NCBI GenBank assembly: GCA_001179505.1
Contig: CDMY01000621.1
Coordinates: 1-41,190, forward strand
Source: Vitrella brassicaformis CCMP3155
Lineage: Eukaryota > Protista > Chromerida
Length of the DNA stretch: 41,190 nt
Reading direction: 5' to 3'
The position numbers and the translations under genes were made by a program. Below the pieces are notes generated by a model. That model was not told the origin of the DNA. It saw only the letters and a list, made by a program, of their open reading frames with translations, and did not search any database. Below, piece after piece: positions 3,826 to 11,849 of the stretch. The first letter of the stretch is position 1; every line of letters starts with the position of its first letter.

Positions 3826-4340
3826 CCCCCCCCCCCCCCAGGGTACGGGCACGGTGGATGGATGCATGCCCAAAAAAGTGACCGACACACCCAGACACAC
3901 CACACACACACACATATAAGATAGGATGAATGACATGCTCGCTTGCCACACGTGTGAACGCGTAGATGTCCTGTACGTGTTGTATGCATGCATCATGCAC
4001 CAAGTCGATTAAGTGGGCGGCTGTCTTCTTCGCTGAATTAGCACGAGCTGGGCCCCTCTGTCTGTCGGTCTGTCTGTCTGTCTGGTGAGACATAAATAGC
4101 ACTCTCACACGCACGCCGTATGGATGGATGGATGGATGGATGGATGGATGGAGACAGGCAGACAGTGAGGTGGCGTAAGGAAGGGCGAGACACACAGAGA
4201 AAGTCAGGAGAAAAATCACTCACCGACCAGACCAATGGATGGAGGCATTGCATTGCATTGATGGACGGATGGACAAAACCAAACCAAAAAGGACTCACAG
4301 AAAAATCCAAACCAAATCACCTACCTCCCTCCCCACCCAC

Positions 4341-4367
4341 CTATAATGGGGGGTCGACCAAGGCCCC

Positions 4368-4429
<62 letters not shown>

Positions 4430-7400
4430 GTGCGCATTCCCGTGCACTCATACCCACCACAACCAAGCCGCCGCCTCATTTCATTTCTCCCCACCTCACC
4501 TGGCAGGTTGAATCCCTCCTTGAGGCCGCCATTGGTATCCAGCAGGCCGTAGAAGTCCTCAAACCCGCACTTTTCGTAGTCAAAGTCGCCACCCTCGCCC
4601 ACATGCTCGCAGTTGAAGAACCGCCACCGCCGCGGCGCGTCTGTCGACGCAAAGTGGAACACACACCGCTCACGCACCCCTCCCTGCTGCACCACCACAC
4701 CACTCCCAGCAGCCATCTGGACCTGCTCCTTCTTATCTGGGGGCTGCTGTGGATCGGCTGCCGACGGTGGCGCGACGACGATAGGCCGCCTGACGACAAA
4801 CTGCGGGCTGATGGAGGACTTCTCCGCCGTTGGTGGTGGGCCTTCGAGCTTGGGGAGGGCTGAGGGGTCGCCGACAAGGTTAGGCAGGTAGGGGCTGCAT
4901 GTCTCCCGGGTCTCCTGGTCTTGCCAGAGACACAGCTGCCACGCGGTGGGCGGGGGCGATGATCCTCCTGGGAAGCGGAAGACCTCCCACCTGAAGTACC
5001 ACCTGCCGTTCCAGTAGTCGTGGGGAGACGTCCAGTCGGCTGGCCAGCCCGCACGCGCTGACGCCGGAGGGGCGTAGTCGTAATCGTAATCGTACTCGTC
5101 TTCTCCTCCGTCTGGTGCTGCTTCGGTCGGCTGGCCTTCGAGCTTGTCGAACCAGAAGCCGCGCTCCGCATCGCCCGGTCCCCCCACCCTGCTCAGGGTC
5201 ACCACCCTGTCCACCACCAGAAACTCCGTCTCGCTCTGACCACCACCACTAGCACCACCACCACCTCCTCCTCCTCCTCCCTCGCCCGACATGTACGCCG
5301 CCCAGTCGTTTGAGAACTCTGCGCCCTCGGCCACAGCGATGATGGTGACGCGCATCTCAAGAGGCAGGTAGTCGACGGCCCTGTCCCAGCATGACTCTTT
5401 GTCGACTGAGAGGTCAGACACGATGCAGCCCCAGGGGGAGTCGTTGCCGTCGAGGGCCCGGAGGGGGCCGCCGATGAAGTCTAGGTCGGTTGGGCGGGCG
5501 AAGTCCACTGGCTTGTCGGCTGTGGCGTGCCACCAGTCGGTGGCGGGCGTAGACACGCTGTAGACGATGTGACTCCGGTTCGCTGCACACGCGTGTTGGG
5601 AGGCATTTGGTGTGTCTGTGTCTGTGTCTGTGTGTGCGAGGTTGTTACTTGTCTCTGAACGGAGTTCCAGCGGCAGGTCATCCACCGGCATCATCAGGGG
5701 ACGCTGTCTTTTCTCCTCATCTTCCTCCGGCTCAGGCTCTATCGGCTCCATAGGCTCCATCCCCGCTGCCTCTTCTGTGTCGACTGTCTCCACCTCGCCC
5801 CCGTCCCGTGTGACCGACAGCTGGTAGTCATAGTAGCTGTCATCACCACCAGGCCGCTTGTCGTTGGACGTCACATAGGGGCTGCACCCCTCCCGCCCCC
5901 CCGTCTGCCACACGCACACCTGCCACGCCGAGGGGGGCGGCCCGTCGCCATCCGGTCGGCCGAAGATCTCCCATCGCGTGTGCCAGCTGCCGTGGTAGTA
6001 GTCGAAAGGGTCCATCCAGCTGTCGGGGTAATCCGCCACTGCAGCGGCGCTCTGCTGGTCGAGGGCGTGCCACCAGAAGCCGTGGTGGCTGCCGGGGTCG
6101 CCGGCGCCCTTGGCCACGGTGACGATCTTGTCTAGGACGAGGAGCTCGCCGAAAGCCAGGGGCAGGTTTGGGTTGTTGAGGTAGTGGACCCAGTTGCCCG
6201 AGAAGTCGGTTCCGTCTGCCACGGCGACGATGGTGACGCGCATCTCGAGAGGCAGGTAGTCGTCAGCCCGCTCCCAGCAGGACTGGGAGGGCGATGTGAG
6301 GTCCGACACGATGCAGCCCTCCTCGGTGCCGTGTGCGCCGTCGAAGGCACGGACGGGGCCGCCGACGCGGGTCTTGCCGTCGACTTGGGAGAGGTCGATT
6401 TGGTTGGACGGATCCTTGTGCCACCAATCCGTGGCGGGGGAGGATGAGCCATAGATCACAATCCCGCTGCCGTCACGAGCTGCAGACAGAGAGACAAGAC
6501 ATGTATACATACATGGCCAGTTTCGATGAGTTGAGTGCGCACCATCTCTGTTAGAGATGGGGCTGAGTTGTGCCGCCTTGAGCTCGACGGCCTCCTCCGC
6601 CTTGTCTTCAACCACCGCCTGGCTGGTGGCGGTGAGCGAGTGCGAGTCGGAGTGCTCTTGAGCAGCAGCAATGGTGGCCTGTGTGCCGGTCGAGACATAG
6701 CTGTAGACGTACTGGAGGAAGTCGTTGGCGTTGCCGATGTCGGCCTGGTCGCCATTGCCGGTGGGCCACCCCGTCTGACCCACATACACAGCTATGTCAG
6801 GATAGCCTGCCCAGCCCAACACACCACACACAACACATCCAGTGATGCAATCTTAATGGTCCTCCTGTGGCAGGGCACCCATACTCACTCACCTAGCCGT
6901 GACAGCGCGGCCTTGAGTGTGTCGACAAGTGCCGCCATCAGCCCGGTGTACTGCGTGCCCGTCCCGTCGTCCGTGTAAGAGCCCTTCCCAAGCGCAAAGT
7001 TCAGGTCGACGTCGGCCTCCCCCTTGGTATACACGTCATACACGTTGACGTTGAACAGCATGGGGGCGCCCTGGCTCTTGAGCACGTCCAGGATGCTCTT
7101 CAGGGCCTCCTGAAACTCATCGACAAACTCGCCTGACGATGGGGGCAGCAACTGACGAAAAAGGAGCAACAAGCGCATTTCAGTGAGACGTGTTGTCGGC
7201 GTGTTCTGCTCTTCTGTGGCTACTTGTTTGAGGATGGTTGGCCCCTCTGCGACTGTGACCCAGAAGGACGCTTGTGCGCTGTCGACGGCCGCCTTGAGGG
7301 TGTTGAGAGATGCGAGCAGCAGCTCAGCCGGGGCTCCGCCCTGGTTCTCGTGCAGTGTGCCGCTGCCCACCACAATCGCCTCCACCTTGTCTTGGAAACC

Positions 7401-10400
7401 CTGTGTGTGTGTGGGAGGGAAAGAGTCCGCATACATATGTGTTGACAAAAGGATGGTCACGTCACCGACTTGACTTACCGTGAGGTGGTCGATCATCTCT
7501 TGTGCCTTTGCCTCGGTCATGCCGAGCTGGCCGTTGGAGATGCCGACATAGATGCGGCATGGGTCGCTGCCGAAGGCCGACGAGACGCTCTGGGCCTCGC
7601 TCTGCAGCGGGAACAGACTGTTCTCCCACGTCTTGATGTACTCCACTCCCGCACTCTGACATGACACACGCAAGACAACACACACACAGGGCACGCACGT
7701 CGAGGGAGGCACAATTATATGGACGCGCAGCCCCACCGCCACCCCCGCCCACCTTGAGTGCGTCGATTGATGATTGGATTGTGTCCTCCGAAGCCACCAG
7801 ATTGACACCCCAGCACCAGCCTTCACCAGGAGTCTCCGGAGGCGTCTCCGGAGGCGGCGGTGGACCATCTTCAGGAGGCGGTGGGCCCGGTGTGGTTGTG
7901 GTCGTCCCGTCAGGTGGAGGCGGTGGGTTCGGCGCTTCCGTCGAGCCATCTGGTGGGGCCGCAGATGGACTAGCTGTGGTGTCTGGCTGTGGAATGGGCG
8001 TCATCGGAGGGTCCGTCATCGGTGGCTCCATTGAGGGTGTCAGTGGCTGAGTGGTGGGCATCGATGTGGAGGGGTCTGACGGCTGGGTGGTCGGCACCAC
8101 TGACGGCATGTCGGTAGGGGTGGGCACCACCTCGGTCGGCGTGGGGGGTGAGGATGGCACAGATGAAGGATCGGACTGGGCCGTCTGGTACACTGCAGAG
8201 AGAGGAAGACAGGCAGACACAGCACAGCACAGCGACACACACCTGCCTGCGACTGCAGCATTCCCTCCCATTTCGTTTGTTCGCCTGCTTACGCATGAGA
8301 ATGGACGGCGAGCCATCGACGCCCAGAATGTTGAGCGGCATGGCGGTGACCTCCACATACTCCTCACCCTCGAACAGCTTCATAATCTCGTTTATCGGCT
8401 CATACACGACCCCCCCGTTGTCACCCGTCGCCGTGTATGGCTGGTCCTTGTCGACGCTCCGCACGGACCCGCTCTTAAAGGTCGCCATCATCCCCGTCGG
8501 CCCCCGGATCTCGAAGCCGCCCGCACTGACCTTGGCGTCGCACTCGACGGCCACGACGGCGAAGGTAGTGGTGCCGTCCCACTCCTCCTCCATGAGCTTG
8601 GTCAGGTCGACGGTGGCCGTGTCGGTTAGGTGGTCGGCCCGGAAGAACCAGGGGGTCGTGACGGGCTCCTTGTCCGCATTGAGAGGGATCAGCTCGAAGC
8701 CAATGAACTTGGGATCTGAATGAACACAGCACGAACGACACGGCCGTGCCAGACAGACCGACATGGACGGAATACATGTCATGTCGGCCAGACGACACGG
8801 CAGGTGGTGCTCAGGTTGGGAATGTCGCGTCGCACCTGAGCAGGGTCTCCCCTGGATGTAGATTGATATCTCGAGCTGAACGCCCGGCGTCTTGTCGGCG
8901 GACATCGGCGTCGCCCGCAGGATGTAGTGCCCGTCGGGCACCACTTCCTCCTCCGACTCGCCAGTGAGGGCATCCATCAGCGACTTGAGCAGCGTCCTCG
9001 TGTCGCCCTCCGACTCCTCAGTGCCGAATGCCGCCCACGCCCAGTCCTGTGGGGTGCCTTCATCTGGGGTGGGCGTGGTTGATGATGACGGTACGGGGAC
9101 CTCTGGATCGGGCGATGTCGGCATGGCTGGTGCGGTGGTCGGCATCGGTACAGTCGTCGGCATTGGCGTGGTCGACGACAAGAACCCATCTGGTACGGGT
9201 GTTGTGGTGGACGTGATGGGTATCTCAGGAGGGGTGGTGCTTGTGGCGGGCGACTGCTCTGGAGCAGGCTCTTCAGGGGCGGGATTGACAGGCACCAATG
9301 GATCCTGAGGCTTAACGACCACCCACGGCTCGTCAATCACGGTGTTCCCGGGCGGATTGCATCCGAAATTGTTCATCGCACAAGCCGGCCGCTGGCAGGA
9401 GAAACACACGGGGCTGCGAGTGGGCCGCCGGGGCCAGGCCTTCCGGCCGTGGTGGCCGATATGCAGCGGCTGCCGATACATCCTGCGGAATGTCAGGGAG
9501 TCGGCCGTCTCTTGCGTGTCGTTGAGACTGTCCACATCCAGCGCCGTCGCCAGGGATTTGGCCGCCTCAGGAGGCACAATCTTGTACGCCATTGCCGACG
9601 CGGGCGGCTCCTCAGCAAAAGTCATGTTCTTGGCCAGCTCGCTGAGCGACAGCCGTTGAGCGGAGGCGGCGAGTCTCCCATCGTCAAGAATCGCCTTGGC
9701 TTCATACTCAAAGATCGCCTCGCCGGTCTCATTTGCGTTTGCGGCCGGGTTGAAGAGCTGAAAGAAGACGGTATCGACGCCATGGTTGGACTTGCCGAGG
9801 ACCAAGAAGGTGAAGTGCTGCACCATGGTTGCATCGAGGAACATGGTGCGGTGGGTGGAGAGGTCGATGGGCCCGCTGCGGGACACCACACTCCCGTCTT
9901 CATCAAGCTCGACGAACTCCATCTCCATGACTGTTTCTGCCGGGTGCGCAGGGACCGCTGCAGCTGCATCTGTGCTTGCCTCTGACTGCACGTTTGTCTG
10001 GGCTTGACCGACTGTCGTCTTTGGTTCACCGGCTCCTCGACTCCGACGCTTGTAGTTGATGAAGCGCTCTGAATGATAGATAGAGGGAGCGCGGACGAGA
10101 GAAGCCATGATTGGGTGTGATTGGCTTGGCCTGGCCAAGCCTTGCTCGGTATCTCACAAACCCACTGACTCACCCCATTTTCGTTTGATCTCCTCGGTGG
10201 TTTCGGTGAGGATGCTGCTGCTGAGGGGGCTCCTGCTCTGAAGGCCTCGCAGCACTGACGATGACAACGACTTGCCTGATCAACGGCCGGCCGGCCACAC
10301 ACATTGAATCTTGAATCAACAAACCTCACAGCCAGGCGGTGTGTCTGCCCGGTCGGTCGGTCTCACCATGTGGGTCAAGCAGGCTCATAAATGGCAGGTA

Positions 10401-10472
10401 CTCGTCCAGCAGGCTCAGCCCAAGCAATAGGATAACACCGGCCGCCAGTGCATTGAGCATAGCCATTGCCAT
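4341..10472 (-). CDS. Large secreted multidomain protein (~1,850 aa, about 12 exons): signal peptide, two Ig-like beta modules with Pro/Thr linkers, degenerate GH17 beta-1,3-glucanase-like barrel interrupted by two Trp-rich repeats
   Basis: Hydrophobic leader MAMAMLNALAAGVILLLGLSLL (10472). A phase-consistent chain joins the 7970-10138, 7462-8367, 6885-7949 and 4321-6831 ORF segments and ends ...FNLP|DGALVDPPL* (stop 4341-4343). GH17 motifs: WGVN, IYVGISN, IVVGSG (canonical IAVGNE), LPPSSGEF, PMLFNVNVY, YTGLMAALVDTLKAAL, VYVGQTGWPT (canonical VVSETGWPS). The exon 1/2 junction is uncertain. Confidence 0.8.
4885..6462 (-). repeat. Two tandem copies of a ~200-aa Trp/Cys-rich coding domain (copy 1 about 5872-6462, copy 2 about 4885-5571)
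   Basis: Both copies share PATDWWH, GGP.RA.DG, GCIVSDL, SCW.RA.DYLPLEMRVTI.AVA.G..FS..W..Y, GFW, P..W..P.DY..G.W..RWE.F..P.G..PPP.AWQ.C.WQ and CSPY. DNA is near-identical over gatggtgacgcgcatctc(a/g)agaggcaggtagtcg. Confidence 0.93.
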
Positions 10473-10763: not shown

Positions 10764-11849
10764 ATGGCATCTTTCGTTTATCTGTCCCCGAGTGTCATCT
10801 TGACAGGCCACTACCTGACGCTGGGCATCGCCCCGGGCGCCTCTAAGGACGACATCCGCAAAGCGTATTTGAGGGCCAGCCTGCGGGTCAGTAAACAGCA
10901 GATGCCCCTTCTCATCCACAAGATCCACGAGAGAGATCCACCCTGGTTTGCCTTGCTGCTTCTTGGTGCATACAGACTCATCCGGACAAGCCGGGAGGCA
11001 CGAAGGAGGCCTTTCAGAGGGTGCAGGAGGCCTTCGCCATCCTCTCTGATGACGCGCAACGACAGGCGTATGACCGAGAAGGTAAGGCACACGCGACGAG
11101 AGAGAGAGCTGCACTTGTTACCAATGGCTTGGAAGGCCGTGAATGTGTGTGTGTCACGGTCGATCAGTCGGTGCGGGTGGCAGTGTGCATGAGCCCCGTC
11201 CCTCGTCGGCCTCTGGCCAGAAGCGCCGACGTGAGAGCGACGAGTCCACGAGCCCTGGCTGGTCATGCGACGAGAGTGACGAAGACGGCCCCGACGACAA
11301 CACCATTCGGTTCGGCACCAAGCACTACGGGCGCTCCTTCGACTGGGTGGAGAGGTACGGGTGTGCGGCCGTATGACACACTGCCGCGTATTTCTGGGGA
11401 TGGATGGATGGATGGCTGGGGTGCGCTTGTCCGTCCATCAGGCACGATCCGGGTTTCATCAAGTACGTGTTGGGCAAGGGCCGCGTCCACAACGTGAATG
11501 AGCTCATGTGGCCGTCGCGGGGCCGCAAATACAACAAGGCAAGCCAGTGAAGTAGATAGAGGGACGGACGATGGATGCGATGCATGTGTGTGTGTTCGTG
11601 TGTGTCCCCTCGCGAAGTGTCAAACAATTATGTGAATGTTGGTTGGTTCAGTTCTACGACTACTGCAAGGCCAAGTACGGCAACGGGAGCTCCCTCAACT
11701 GGTCGCGGTGCTGGTACTACGACCCCTGCGACCCTTACGAGGTACCTACAAACCAGAGAGACAGACTGATGGCTTTCGGTTGCCAGACGACCTGTGCGTC
11801 CTTGGTCTTCATTCAGGTATTGAGAACGGGTAGAATGAGAGGCGCCTGA
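10764..11849 (+). CDS. DnaJ/J-domain protein (class C) with uncharacterised C-terminal domain, 6 exons
   Basis: HYLTLGIAPGASKDDIRKAYLRASLR|THPDKPGGTKEAFQRVQEAFAILSDDAQRQAYDRE is a complete J-domain with the HPD motif. Downstream exons are phase-consistent if one GC-AG intron (donor 11539) is used. Confidence 0.85.

Follow-up and report, generated by a model that had tools for sequence, protein, structure and literature searches.

Gene Structure and Expression

The window analyzed here, a stretch of 41,190 nt from Vitrella brassicaformis, carries one expressed gene of 12 exons extending from ~10472 to 4341 on the minus strand, on which all the features described below are located. This gene encodes a modular protein of ~1,707 aa. 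The summed exon lengths amount to 5,124 nt, which is divisible by three, and the frame is open across ~1,700 codons in the 12 exons. The evidence for both the sequence and the splicing consists of assembled contigs from four runs belonging to three studies, from which rare variants drop out: the DNA contigs (two studies) and the spliced, RNA-derived contigs (two studies) showed zero differing letters over positions 4250–10200. Nine introns were confirmed, all of the GT..AG type and spliced out in the contigs of two studies; the spliced contigs belong to runs X4 and X6, with eight listed GT..AG joints and one further skip. The reading frame is intact, as described in the first-pass annotation, but the gene is much larger than assumed there, its product being no small secreted GH17 protein.

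In the order of the protein, a predicted signal peptide is followed by a stretch of ~690 aa that lacks known domains, then by Pro/Thr-rich linkers, an apparently dead GH17 domain, two Trp/Cys-rich domains, and a weak GH17-like motif in the C-terminal part. An exon is required upstream of exon 2, since the latter contains no ATG and is closely preceded by a stop codon. The putative exon 1 (10367–10472), which lies outside the read-joint coverage, starts with an ATG at 10472 and would encode a hydrophobic N-terminus (MAMAMLNALAAGVILLLGLSLL...), likely to be a signal peptide or a signal anchor; the donor GT at 10366 and the acceptor AG at 10276 are consistent with a phase 1 boundary. The 3' end of exon 2 (10174–10275) is fixed by a read joint between 10068 and 10174, while its 5' end was deduced. 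Exon 3 (8836–10068), defined by read joints and the open frame, encodes the N-terminal region including a Pro/Thr-rich stretch and gave no Pfam matches at E ≤ 1. The second part of the N-terminal region is encoded by exon 4 (8293–8715; read joints and frame), the region of which gave no matches in either Pfam or the ESM Atlas. The sequence MGGNAAVAGRCVSLCC... at ~8270 was discarded as a candidate signal peptide, as the read joints place it in an intron (8193–8292). Exon 5 (7753–8192), delimited by the joints linking 8192 to 8293 and 7655 to 7753, encodes a Pro/Thr/Ser-rich linker, after which the GH17-like barrel begins. Judging from the hydrophobic N-terminus in the deduced exon 1 and the long Pro/Thr/Ser linkers, the ~1,707-aa protein is probably secreted or associated with the wall.

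The GH17 Domain

The exons were analyzed either singly or as unspliced ORFs. The ORF spanning 6888–7655 matched the Pfam family PF00332 (clan GH-A) with 36.2 bits, the cut-off being 28.2, and the individual exons scored 75 (exon 8), 21 (exon 9), 7 (exon 7), and 2.6 (exon 6) bits against an HMM made from 19 GH17 sequences. The beginning of the barrel, WGVNLV... in exon 5, was recognized as β1 by eye, the HMM having missed this 26-aa piece. Exon 6 (7479–7655; read joints, MAFFT, and the weak HMM match of 2.6 bits) corresponds to β2–α3, with IKTW in place of RIYF and ISNG in place of vpNE/ND. Exon 7 (7224–7400) was assigned to β4-α4-β5 on the basis of read joints, the 19-sequence HMM (7.2 bits), and a long-loop GH17 HMM (12.3 bits). 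The best conserved GH17 segment is encoded by exon 8 (6893–7151), which extends from PPSSGEF to the α6 region and covers positions 136–220 of the Pfam profile. Exon 9 (6543–6806), which is supported by read joints, includes β7 with the QTGWP motif, α7, a GTQ, and then an acidic helical linker.

The sequence matches in the PDB were 6jms, 2cyg, and 1ghs. An AF2 model of the β2–α6 region reached a pLDDT of 77 and a pTM of 0.76; it describes a partial barrel, its input was an unspliced ORF in which two introns are translated, and its MSA was already in the register used in the first-pass annotation. When this model was submitted to Foldseek, the top nine matches were all plant GH17 proteins (E from 2e-11 to 5e-8; query-normalized TM 0.55–0.66), the (β/α)8 fold being closest to solved GH17 structures. 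About 24 of the ~31 GH17 columns conserved at ≥80% between β2 and α7 are kept, and those lost include N101, E102, and E250 (P0005 numbering, corrected by the HMM alignments). The homology with GH17 is beyond chance. No second GH17 copy was detected in a six-frame HMM scan of the whole window.

Nucleophile and Acid/Base Positions

The minus strand read from 6777 gives cag acg ggg tgg ccc, that is Q-T-G-W-P, versus the E[ST]GWP of GH17 enzymes. The Gln codon CAG (6775–6777) occupies the position of the catalytic nucleophile, Glu231 of barley GII: exon 9 alone aligned with residues 223–265 of barley 1ghs with the Gln opposite Glu231, and the 21-bit alignment with the 19-sequence HMM placed it opposite the Glu of sEsGWP. 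The codon is covered by runs X1, X3, X4, and X6 (record 16) with zero differences. The nucleophile Glu is replaced by Gln, and this assignment is firm.

At the acid/base position, the minus strand from 7370 to 7359 reads gtg ggc agc ggc (V-G-S-G), where the Ser-Gly codons AGC GGC (7359–7364) again showed zero read differences. Assigning these residues to the Asn-Glu of the family hinges on the alignment register. The general GH17 HMM placed Ser-Gly opposite Asn-Glu with 7 bits and a high posterior, the long-loop HMM aligned avGNEvL with VVGSGTL at 12.3 bits with one inserted residue, and the MAFFT alignments gave the same correspondence. The AF2 model shows a strand VEAIVV (V91–V96) followed by coil, which is consistent with this register. 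The rival register, in which the HE of HENQ lies on the NE motif, was obtained only in a pairwise phmmer stretch versus barley 1ghs scoring 0.5 bits; it was rejected in view of the long-loop HMM, the short-loop HMM having failed to align the strand. Loop lengths have no discriminating power between the two registers; both candidate positions lie at a distance from the helix within the family range of 10–15 residues. Judging from the alignments and the predicted model, the Ser-Gly register is the better supported of the two.

The Glu of HENQGGA, encoded by GAG (7347–7349), is located four residues past the canonical acid/base position, in the β4-α4 loop, which is coil in the AF2 model with a low-confidence pLDDT of ~64. 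Its spacing to the next helix and to PPS matches that of barley NEVQGGA.

The reading of the two motifs proposed in the first-pass annotation therefore stands: QTGWP was read on the minus strand and aligned with both Glu231 of 1ghs and the profile Glu, and VGSG has the sequence proposed, in a register backed by the HMMs, MAFFT, and the AF2 model. The codons are genuine rather than sequencing errors, given the identical letters in the contigs of the four runs and three studies. The remark made there on the Glu of HENQ, a residue four positions downstream in the β4-α4 loop, was judged to be fair.

Residues of the Substrate Cleft

The cleft residues of the barley enzyme, along with the fact that its E94A and E93A variants yield no products, have been reported previously (PMC11080057). 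These residues, in barley numbering, were carried over to the Vitrella sequence by alignment, those of β1 and of the C-terminal part being placed by eye only. Among the catalytic residues, E94 corresponds to Gly and E231 to Gln. In the rest of the cleft, Asp57 is replaced by Gly and Phe171 by Asp, and in weaker or by-eye alignments Phe34 is replaced by Glu and Tyr5 is also replaced. Tyr170 is kept, and Tyr33, Tyr184, and Phe137 are changed conservatively to Trp, Phe, and Leu, respectively. A supposed loss of the β6 tyrosine of clan GH-A was dismissed, as Tyr170 is the conserved cleft residue (PMC11080057) and is retained here. Since several sugar-contacting residues are replaced, the idea of a glucan binder is weakened; part of the cleft is eroded, but as some of its aromatic residues appear to persist, glucan binding is still plausible.

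Trp/Cys-Rich Domains and C-Terminal Segment

The GH17 domain is followed after α7 by an insertion of ~625 aa. Exon 10 (5649–6479) encodes a first Trp/Cys-rich domain of ~200 aa and an acidic linker, and exon 11 (4500–5582) continues with a second such domain, 40% identical to the first (E 5e-56), before a linker rich in Pro and Gln and the C-terminal segment. The Trp/Cys-rich domain gave no matches in Pfam or in the ESM Atlas, and an AF2 prediction based on a two-row alignment was unusable (pLDDT 40). Contig 12 of X4 skips 5583–5648, a 66-nt GT..AG intron, and stops at 4500 beside a GT donor. The putative exon 12 (4341–4369) would end the protein with …DGALVDPPL and a TAG stop (4343–4341); its acceptor AG (4371–4370) sits after a (CT)n(GT)n repeat that the read comparison skipped.

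In the C-terminal segment, a PSSM scan picked out FEDFYGLLDTNGGLKEGFNL (4504–4563) as a weak match to the C-terminal GH17 motif E..FGLF.pd..pvY. This was the top match among the six-frame pieces of the window, with a score reached by 80 of 2000 shuffles. The β8 motif yIFalFNEN.K was not detected in the PSSM scan, and an HMM search of the exon-11 tail gave no match.

Search for Relatives

In an exhaustive phmmer search of 1.8 billion representative proteins, neither an ortholog nor the gene's own protein was among the matches, which numbered 33 and were all ordinary GH17 proteins aligned to exon 8 only. Word-index homolog searches performed with the whole 827-aa ORF and with the Trp/Cys-rich domain alone, in a length window too short for a protein of ~1,700 aa, yielded nothing, and no related locus was found among the metagenome contigs. 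In the literature consulted, nothing specific was found on natural dead GH17 proteins, the ZERZAUST papers contain no statement about missing catalytic residues, and almost nothing has been published on the biochemistry of chromerid walls.

Functional Interpretation

The fold and the structural signature residues are kept, the catalytic residues are lost, and the gene is intact and expressed. On the residues present at these positions, the GH17 domain is almost certainly unable to cut glucan in the usual way. The non-catalytic character proposed in the first-pass annotation is well supported, as both canonical Glu positions are non-acidic and Asp57 and Phe171 are also replaced; the presence of β-1,3-glucan in coccidian oocyst walls, which was invoked there, is likewise correct (PMC3518913). 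The place suggested there for the protein, in the walls of resting or sporangial stages, is a conjecture on which the present results bear neither way. The reading we favor, and consider reasonably likely, is that of a GH17 pseudo-enzyme in an expressed, probably secreted or wall-associated protein, having a non-catalytic role in binding or in the organization of the wall. The domain would be incapable of double-displacement hydrolysis, the defining reaction of GH17, and would act non-catalytically, its likeliest roles being those of a carbohydrate-binding or a wall-organizing module. This module would be displayed on Pro/Thr-rich, probably O-glycosylated linkers, alongside the two lineage-specific Trp/Cys-rich domains, and β-1,3-glucan would be the obvious candidate ligand.

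The most serious competitor, which we nevertheless hold to be unlikely, is a structural relic that binds no sugar: within a large protein of the wall or surface, the barrel would act only as a rigid spacer or in protein-protein interactions, leaving any ligand specificity to the Trp/Cys-rich or N-terminal domains. The replacements of Asp57 and Phe171 in addition to the two catalytic Glu, those of Tyr5 and Phe34 on weaker or by-eye alignment, the confinement of clear GH17 similarity to the exon-8 segment, and the possibility that the barrel is incomplete all point in this direction. However, aromatic cleft residues persist (Tyr33 as Trp, Tyr170, and Tyr184 as Phe), the cleft-shaping signatures GWP and PPSxG are unchanged, and dead glycosidase folds elsewhere, such as the GH18 chi-lectins and the GH16-like domains of insect β-glucan recognition proteins, usually retain ligand binding. 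Residual or altered catalysis, in which the Glu of HENQ would take over as a shifted acid/base and the task of the nucleophile would fall to another residue or an altered mechanism, with weak hydrolase or transglycosylase activity as the outcome, is very improbable. The 44 residues separating this Glu from PPS, as in a barley GII-like sequence, the conserved E-x-Q-G-G-A, and a distance to the helix that suits either candidate position speak for it, but no covalent glycosyl-enzyme intermediate can be formed with a Gln, VYVGQTGWPTGNG has no adjacent acidic residue, the profile alignments favor Gly at the acid/base position, and the Glu of HENQ lies in a low-confidence loop of the AF2 model while Asp57 is lost too; besides, in barley GII the E94A exchange by itself is enough to stop product formation (PMC11080057).

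That the gene is a decaying pseudogene, or that the substitutions are assembly errors, might be suspected from the fact that no ortholog or close homolog occurs in any library searched. This explanation is largely refuted and deserves hardly any credence: the frame is open over ~1,700 codons and 12 exons, the nine observed introns are all GT..AG and are removed in the contigs of two studies, and the four runs, drawn from three studies, agree in every letter. Given its expression, correct splicing, and uninterrupted frame, the gene should be described as encoding a pseudo-enzyme and not as a pseudogene. A bolder extension of the pseudo-enzyme reading, which we regard as a rather improbable speculation, is that β-glucanase folds in Vitrella (GH16, GH17, and GH81) might as a whole set have been turned into non-catalytic binders of wall glucan or organizers of the wall, and that the GH17 barrel, split after α7 by the lineage-specific ~625-aa tandem Trp/Cys-rich domain and closed by a C-terminal β8, might form a new composite, glucan-binding scaffold in the laminated wall of the cell or the sporangium.

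Comparison with Known Systems

Chromerids are photosynthetic relatives of the apicomplexan parasites. A GH17 pseudo-enzyme that is expressed as part of a mucin-like modular protein would provide a concrete handle on the organization of their wall, and it represents an instance, rare in nature, of a GH17 fold in which both catalytic carboxylates are lost. Glycosidase-derived pseudo-enzymes and lectins include the GH18 chi-lectins (YKL-40), the GH16-like domain of insect β-1,3-glucan recognition proteins, and the GH1-like Klotho, which have kept the fold despite the replacement of catalytic carboxylates and function outside the cell in binding or signaling. The present case differs from these in belonging to another fold family (GH17), in having a partly eroded cleft, and in that ligand binding is only proposed. 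The reuse of a dead glycosidase as a binder is a well-known principle; the present case would add a family and a lineage to it and overturns nothing.

The best matches in terms of both sequence and structure were the plant GH17 endo-β-1,3-glucanases, namely barley GII (1ghs), Cryptomeria CJP38 (6jms), and those of banana (2cyg) and potato (3ur7/4gzi). The (β/α)8 fold is common to these enzymes and the Vitrella domain, and the plant signatures PPSxGxF, N-x-x-x-Y, L-x-[YF]-A, Y-x-x-L, V-D, GWP, NA, and GT are all kept in the same order and with the same spacing, whereas Asn-Glu has become Ser-Gly, the nucleophile Glu has become Gln, Asp57 Gly, Phe171 Asp, and GTP GTQ. The identity with the plant proteins is only ~20–30% and drops below detection outside exon 8. 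The plant enzymes are 300–350 aa long, whereas the domain studied here is embedded in a protein of ~1,707 aa, with ~625 aa inserted after α7.

Apicomplexan oocyst walls use β-1,3-glucan (PMC3518913), and in the coccidian wall the plant-like TgGH17/EtGH17 proteins carry a Cys-rich glucan-binding domain (Bushkin et al., 2012, PMC3518913). An alveolate, plant-like GH17 combined with a Cys-rich accessory domain in a secreted wall protein, which the Vitrella product probably is, and a β-1,3-glucan wall biology in the wider lineage are features common to both systems (PMC3518913). TgGH17 is treated as a hydrolase and is encoded by a single exon, with its Cys-rich domain N-terminal to GH17 (PMC3518913); compared with this published description, the Vitrella protein has lost the catalytic residues, carries its Trp/Cys-rich domains after α7, and is encoded by 12 exons.

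Family membership and fold of the GH17-like domain

The unspliced open reading frame at 6888-7655 (minus strand) matched Pfam PF00332 with 36.2 bits, the gathering cut-off being 28.2, and the PDB sequence search yielded CJP38 6jms (1.5e-8), banana 2cyg, and barley 1ghs. When the exons were searched singly with an HMM of 19 GH17 proteins from the library, the scores were 75 bits for exon 8 (6893-7151), 21 for exon 9 (6543-6806), 7 for exon 7 (7224-7400), and 2.6 for exon 6 (7479-7655), and the matches run in the correct order along the GH17 profile. The AF2 model of the unspliced frame (pLDDT 77, pTM 0.76; 31-row alignment) consists of exons 6-8 plus two translated in-frame introns, which are non-native insertions, and lacks beta1, beta7, and beta8. 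Searched against the PDB with Foldseek, this model has plant GH17 structures as its nine best matches (E 2e-11 to 5e-8), and beyond the ninth the E-values exceed 1e-3.

Catalytic and cleft residues

Direct reading of the minus strand gives gtg ggc agc ggc (V-G-S-G) at 7370-7359, followed by aca ctg cac gag aac cag (T-L-H-E-N-Q), and cag acg ggg tgg ccc (Q-T-G-W-P) from 6777 downward, which agrees in letters and coordinates with the first-pass annotation, where VGSG and QTGWP had been taken to replace the VGNE and ETGWP motifs. Contigs of four public sequencing runs were aligned to 4250-10200: those of X1 and X3 are unspliced and correspond to DNA, while X4 and X6 are RNA-derived, since their contigs carry spliced forms. 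Across these four runs from three studies no letter differs from the window, in a comparison based on assembled contigs, from which rare variants could escape. Both codon sites are covered by contigs of X1, X3, and X4, and by two X6 contigs (record 16 for 6775-6777 and record 17 for 7359-7364). For practical purposes, neither a sequencing error nor fixed RNA editing can account for these codons.

Exon 9 alone aligns to residues 223-265 of 1ghs (barley GII), and its Gln faces residue 231, the catalytic Glu of that enzyme (PMC11080057); the HMM alignment also places Gln at the nucleophile position. Exon 9 also keeps the neighbouring G-W-P, N-A, and G-T positions, which makes this register certain.

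At the acid/base position two registers were weighed. That placing VGNE over VGSG is returned by the general GH17 HMM with a high posterior, MAFFT agrees, and a long-loop GH17 HMM gives it 12.3 bits with one inserted residue, matching the Leu two positions on; it is also consistent with the AF2 model, in which VEAIVV forms a strand and GSGTLHENQGGAP a coil (pLDDT about 64 for residues 101-110). The alternative, in which the HE of HENQGGA lies over the NE of barley NEVQGGA, appears only in pairwise phmmer, as a 0.5-bit stretch, and from the HENQ Glu to the PPS motif we counted by hand 44 gapless residues in the query; the corresponding distance in the barley-like library protein P0003 is equal. 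A short-loop GH17 HMM left the beta4 strand unaligned. Loop length is uninformative on the register, since in the relatives 10-15 residues lie between the catalytic Glu and the PAM-motif Ala, a range that includes both query distances (15 from Gly and 11 from the HENQ Glu). From the alignments we conclude that the canonical acid/base position is a Gly in the query, with a Glu four residues past it, in the beta4-alpha4 loop.

About 24 of the approximately 31 GH17 columns showing at least 80% conservation between beta2 and alpha7 are kept, as counted on the MAFFT alignment, or on the HMM alignment where the two disagree; N101, E102, Y186, P187, N222, E250, and P287 (numbering of library protein P0005) are lost. 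The conserved cleft residues listed for the barley enzymes (PMC11080057) were mapped via the pairwise, exon-9, and MAFFT alignments: Glu94 corresponds to Gly, Glu231 to Gln, Asp57 to Gly, Phe171 to Asp, Phe34 to Glu, Phe137 to Leu, Tyr33 to Trp, and Tyr184 to Phe, and Tyr170 is kept. Tyr5 (Leu in the query) and the C-terminal Glu279, Lys282, Glu288, and Phe291 were placed by eye only. Loss of the catalytic carboxylates, together with retention of the structural signatures and part of the aromatic lining, looks like the pattern of a pseudo-enzyme, and is no proof that sugar binding continues. The non-catalytic reading first proposed for the domain is well supported, whereas glucan binding and a stage-specific function are candidate roles. 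The gene exemplifies the known principle of a glycosidase fold turned pseudo-enzyme, here a GH17 domain in an unusually large, otherwise orphan modular protein.

Gene structure and in-frame introns

One X4 contig of 5,279 nt covers the entire region of the gene, with joints at 6479|6543, 6806|6893, 7151|7224, 7400|7479, 7655|7753, 8192|8293, 8715|8836, and 10068|10174; it likewise skips 5583-5648, where there is a masked repeat. All nine observed introns start with GT and end with AG, and the transcript also includes the upstream 722-codon open reading frame (7970-10138). A hydrophobic stretch near 8270 was rejected as a signal peptide, being intronic according to the contig joints. The exon ending at 10174 has no ATG and a stop lies just upstream of its predicted acceptor, so that one more 5' exon is required for the start codon; the sole fitting exon, from 10472 (ATG) to 10367 on the minus strand, would encode a hydrophobic N-terminus. 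We infer that the protein is secreted. With this exon and a putative last exon at 4369-4341 (minus strand), the 12 exons total 5,124 nt: 1,707 codons and the stop codon. Most of the putative last intron is taken up by a long (CT)n(GT)n microsatellite (4363-4435), the joint there being a predicted one.

The length is divisible by three in six of the nine contig-confirmed introns, all on the minus strand: 63 nt (6480-6542), 66 nt (5583-5648), 72 nt (7152-7223), 78 nt (7401-7478), 120 nt (8716-8835), and 105 nt (10069-10173). In-frame stops are absent from at least five of them (63, 66, 72, 78, and 120 nt), so that their retention would insert extra in-frame peptides and not truncate the protein; the long unspliced open reading frames at the locus are explained in the same way.

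Barrel completion and accompanying domains

No beta8 motif was found in a PSSM scan of the window, and the GH17 HMM gave no match to it either. Alpha7 is followed by an acidic linker and then by two Trp/Cys-rich domains, each about 200 aa long, and resemblance to the GH17 C-terminus is confined to the last 70 or so residues of the protein. The best match in the whole window to a PSSM of the E..FGLF motif, at 4504-4563, lies close to the protein end, as E..FGLF does in GH17, with a score reached by 80 of 2000 shuffles. A GH17 barrel split by an insertion after alpha7 is thus a plausible but hypothetical arrangement.

The Trp/Cys-rich domains stand in tandem at 4885-6462 (exons 10 and 11) and share 40% identity (E 5e-56). 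They had no match in Pfam, the Atlas, or metagenomes, and the AF2 model, from a two-row alignment, has a pLDDT of 40. The N-terminal part of about 550 aa (8293-10068) likewise had no Pfam match at E<=1 and no Atlas match; it apparently comprises two beta-rich parts with a Pro/Thr-rich stretch between them.

Relatives and genomic setting

An exhaustive phmmer search, run over 1.84 billion representative proteins, gave 33 matches at E<=1e-3, none of them an orthologue of the gene, the best scoring 71 bits at 29% identity; the exon-8 segment is the sole region matched in all 33. Inspection of the complete sequences of the top five showed ordinary plant-type GH17 proteins. In alignments of some 30 relatives, VGNE and E[ST]GWP occur in nearly all the full-length rows, the few departing ones being one repeat of library protein P0001 with VGND, P0023, and P0007. 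Natural departures at the catalytic motifs are found in some plant tandem GH17 proteins of the library, namely the VGND repeat of P0001 (residues 210-530), P0002 with ETGRP and ETSWR, and P0023 without VGNE; decay of the repeats or errors in the gene models may be the cause.

Coccidian oocyst walls contain beta-1,3-glucan, and a coccidian plant-like GH17 hydrolase bears a Cys-rich glucan-binding domain (Bushkin et al., PMC3518913).

A J-domain-like start (GHYLTLGIAPGASKDDIRKAYLRASL) lies head to head with the GH17-like gene at about 10830-11100 on the plus strand, and the few hundred bases between the two may act as a common promoter region.
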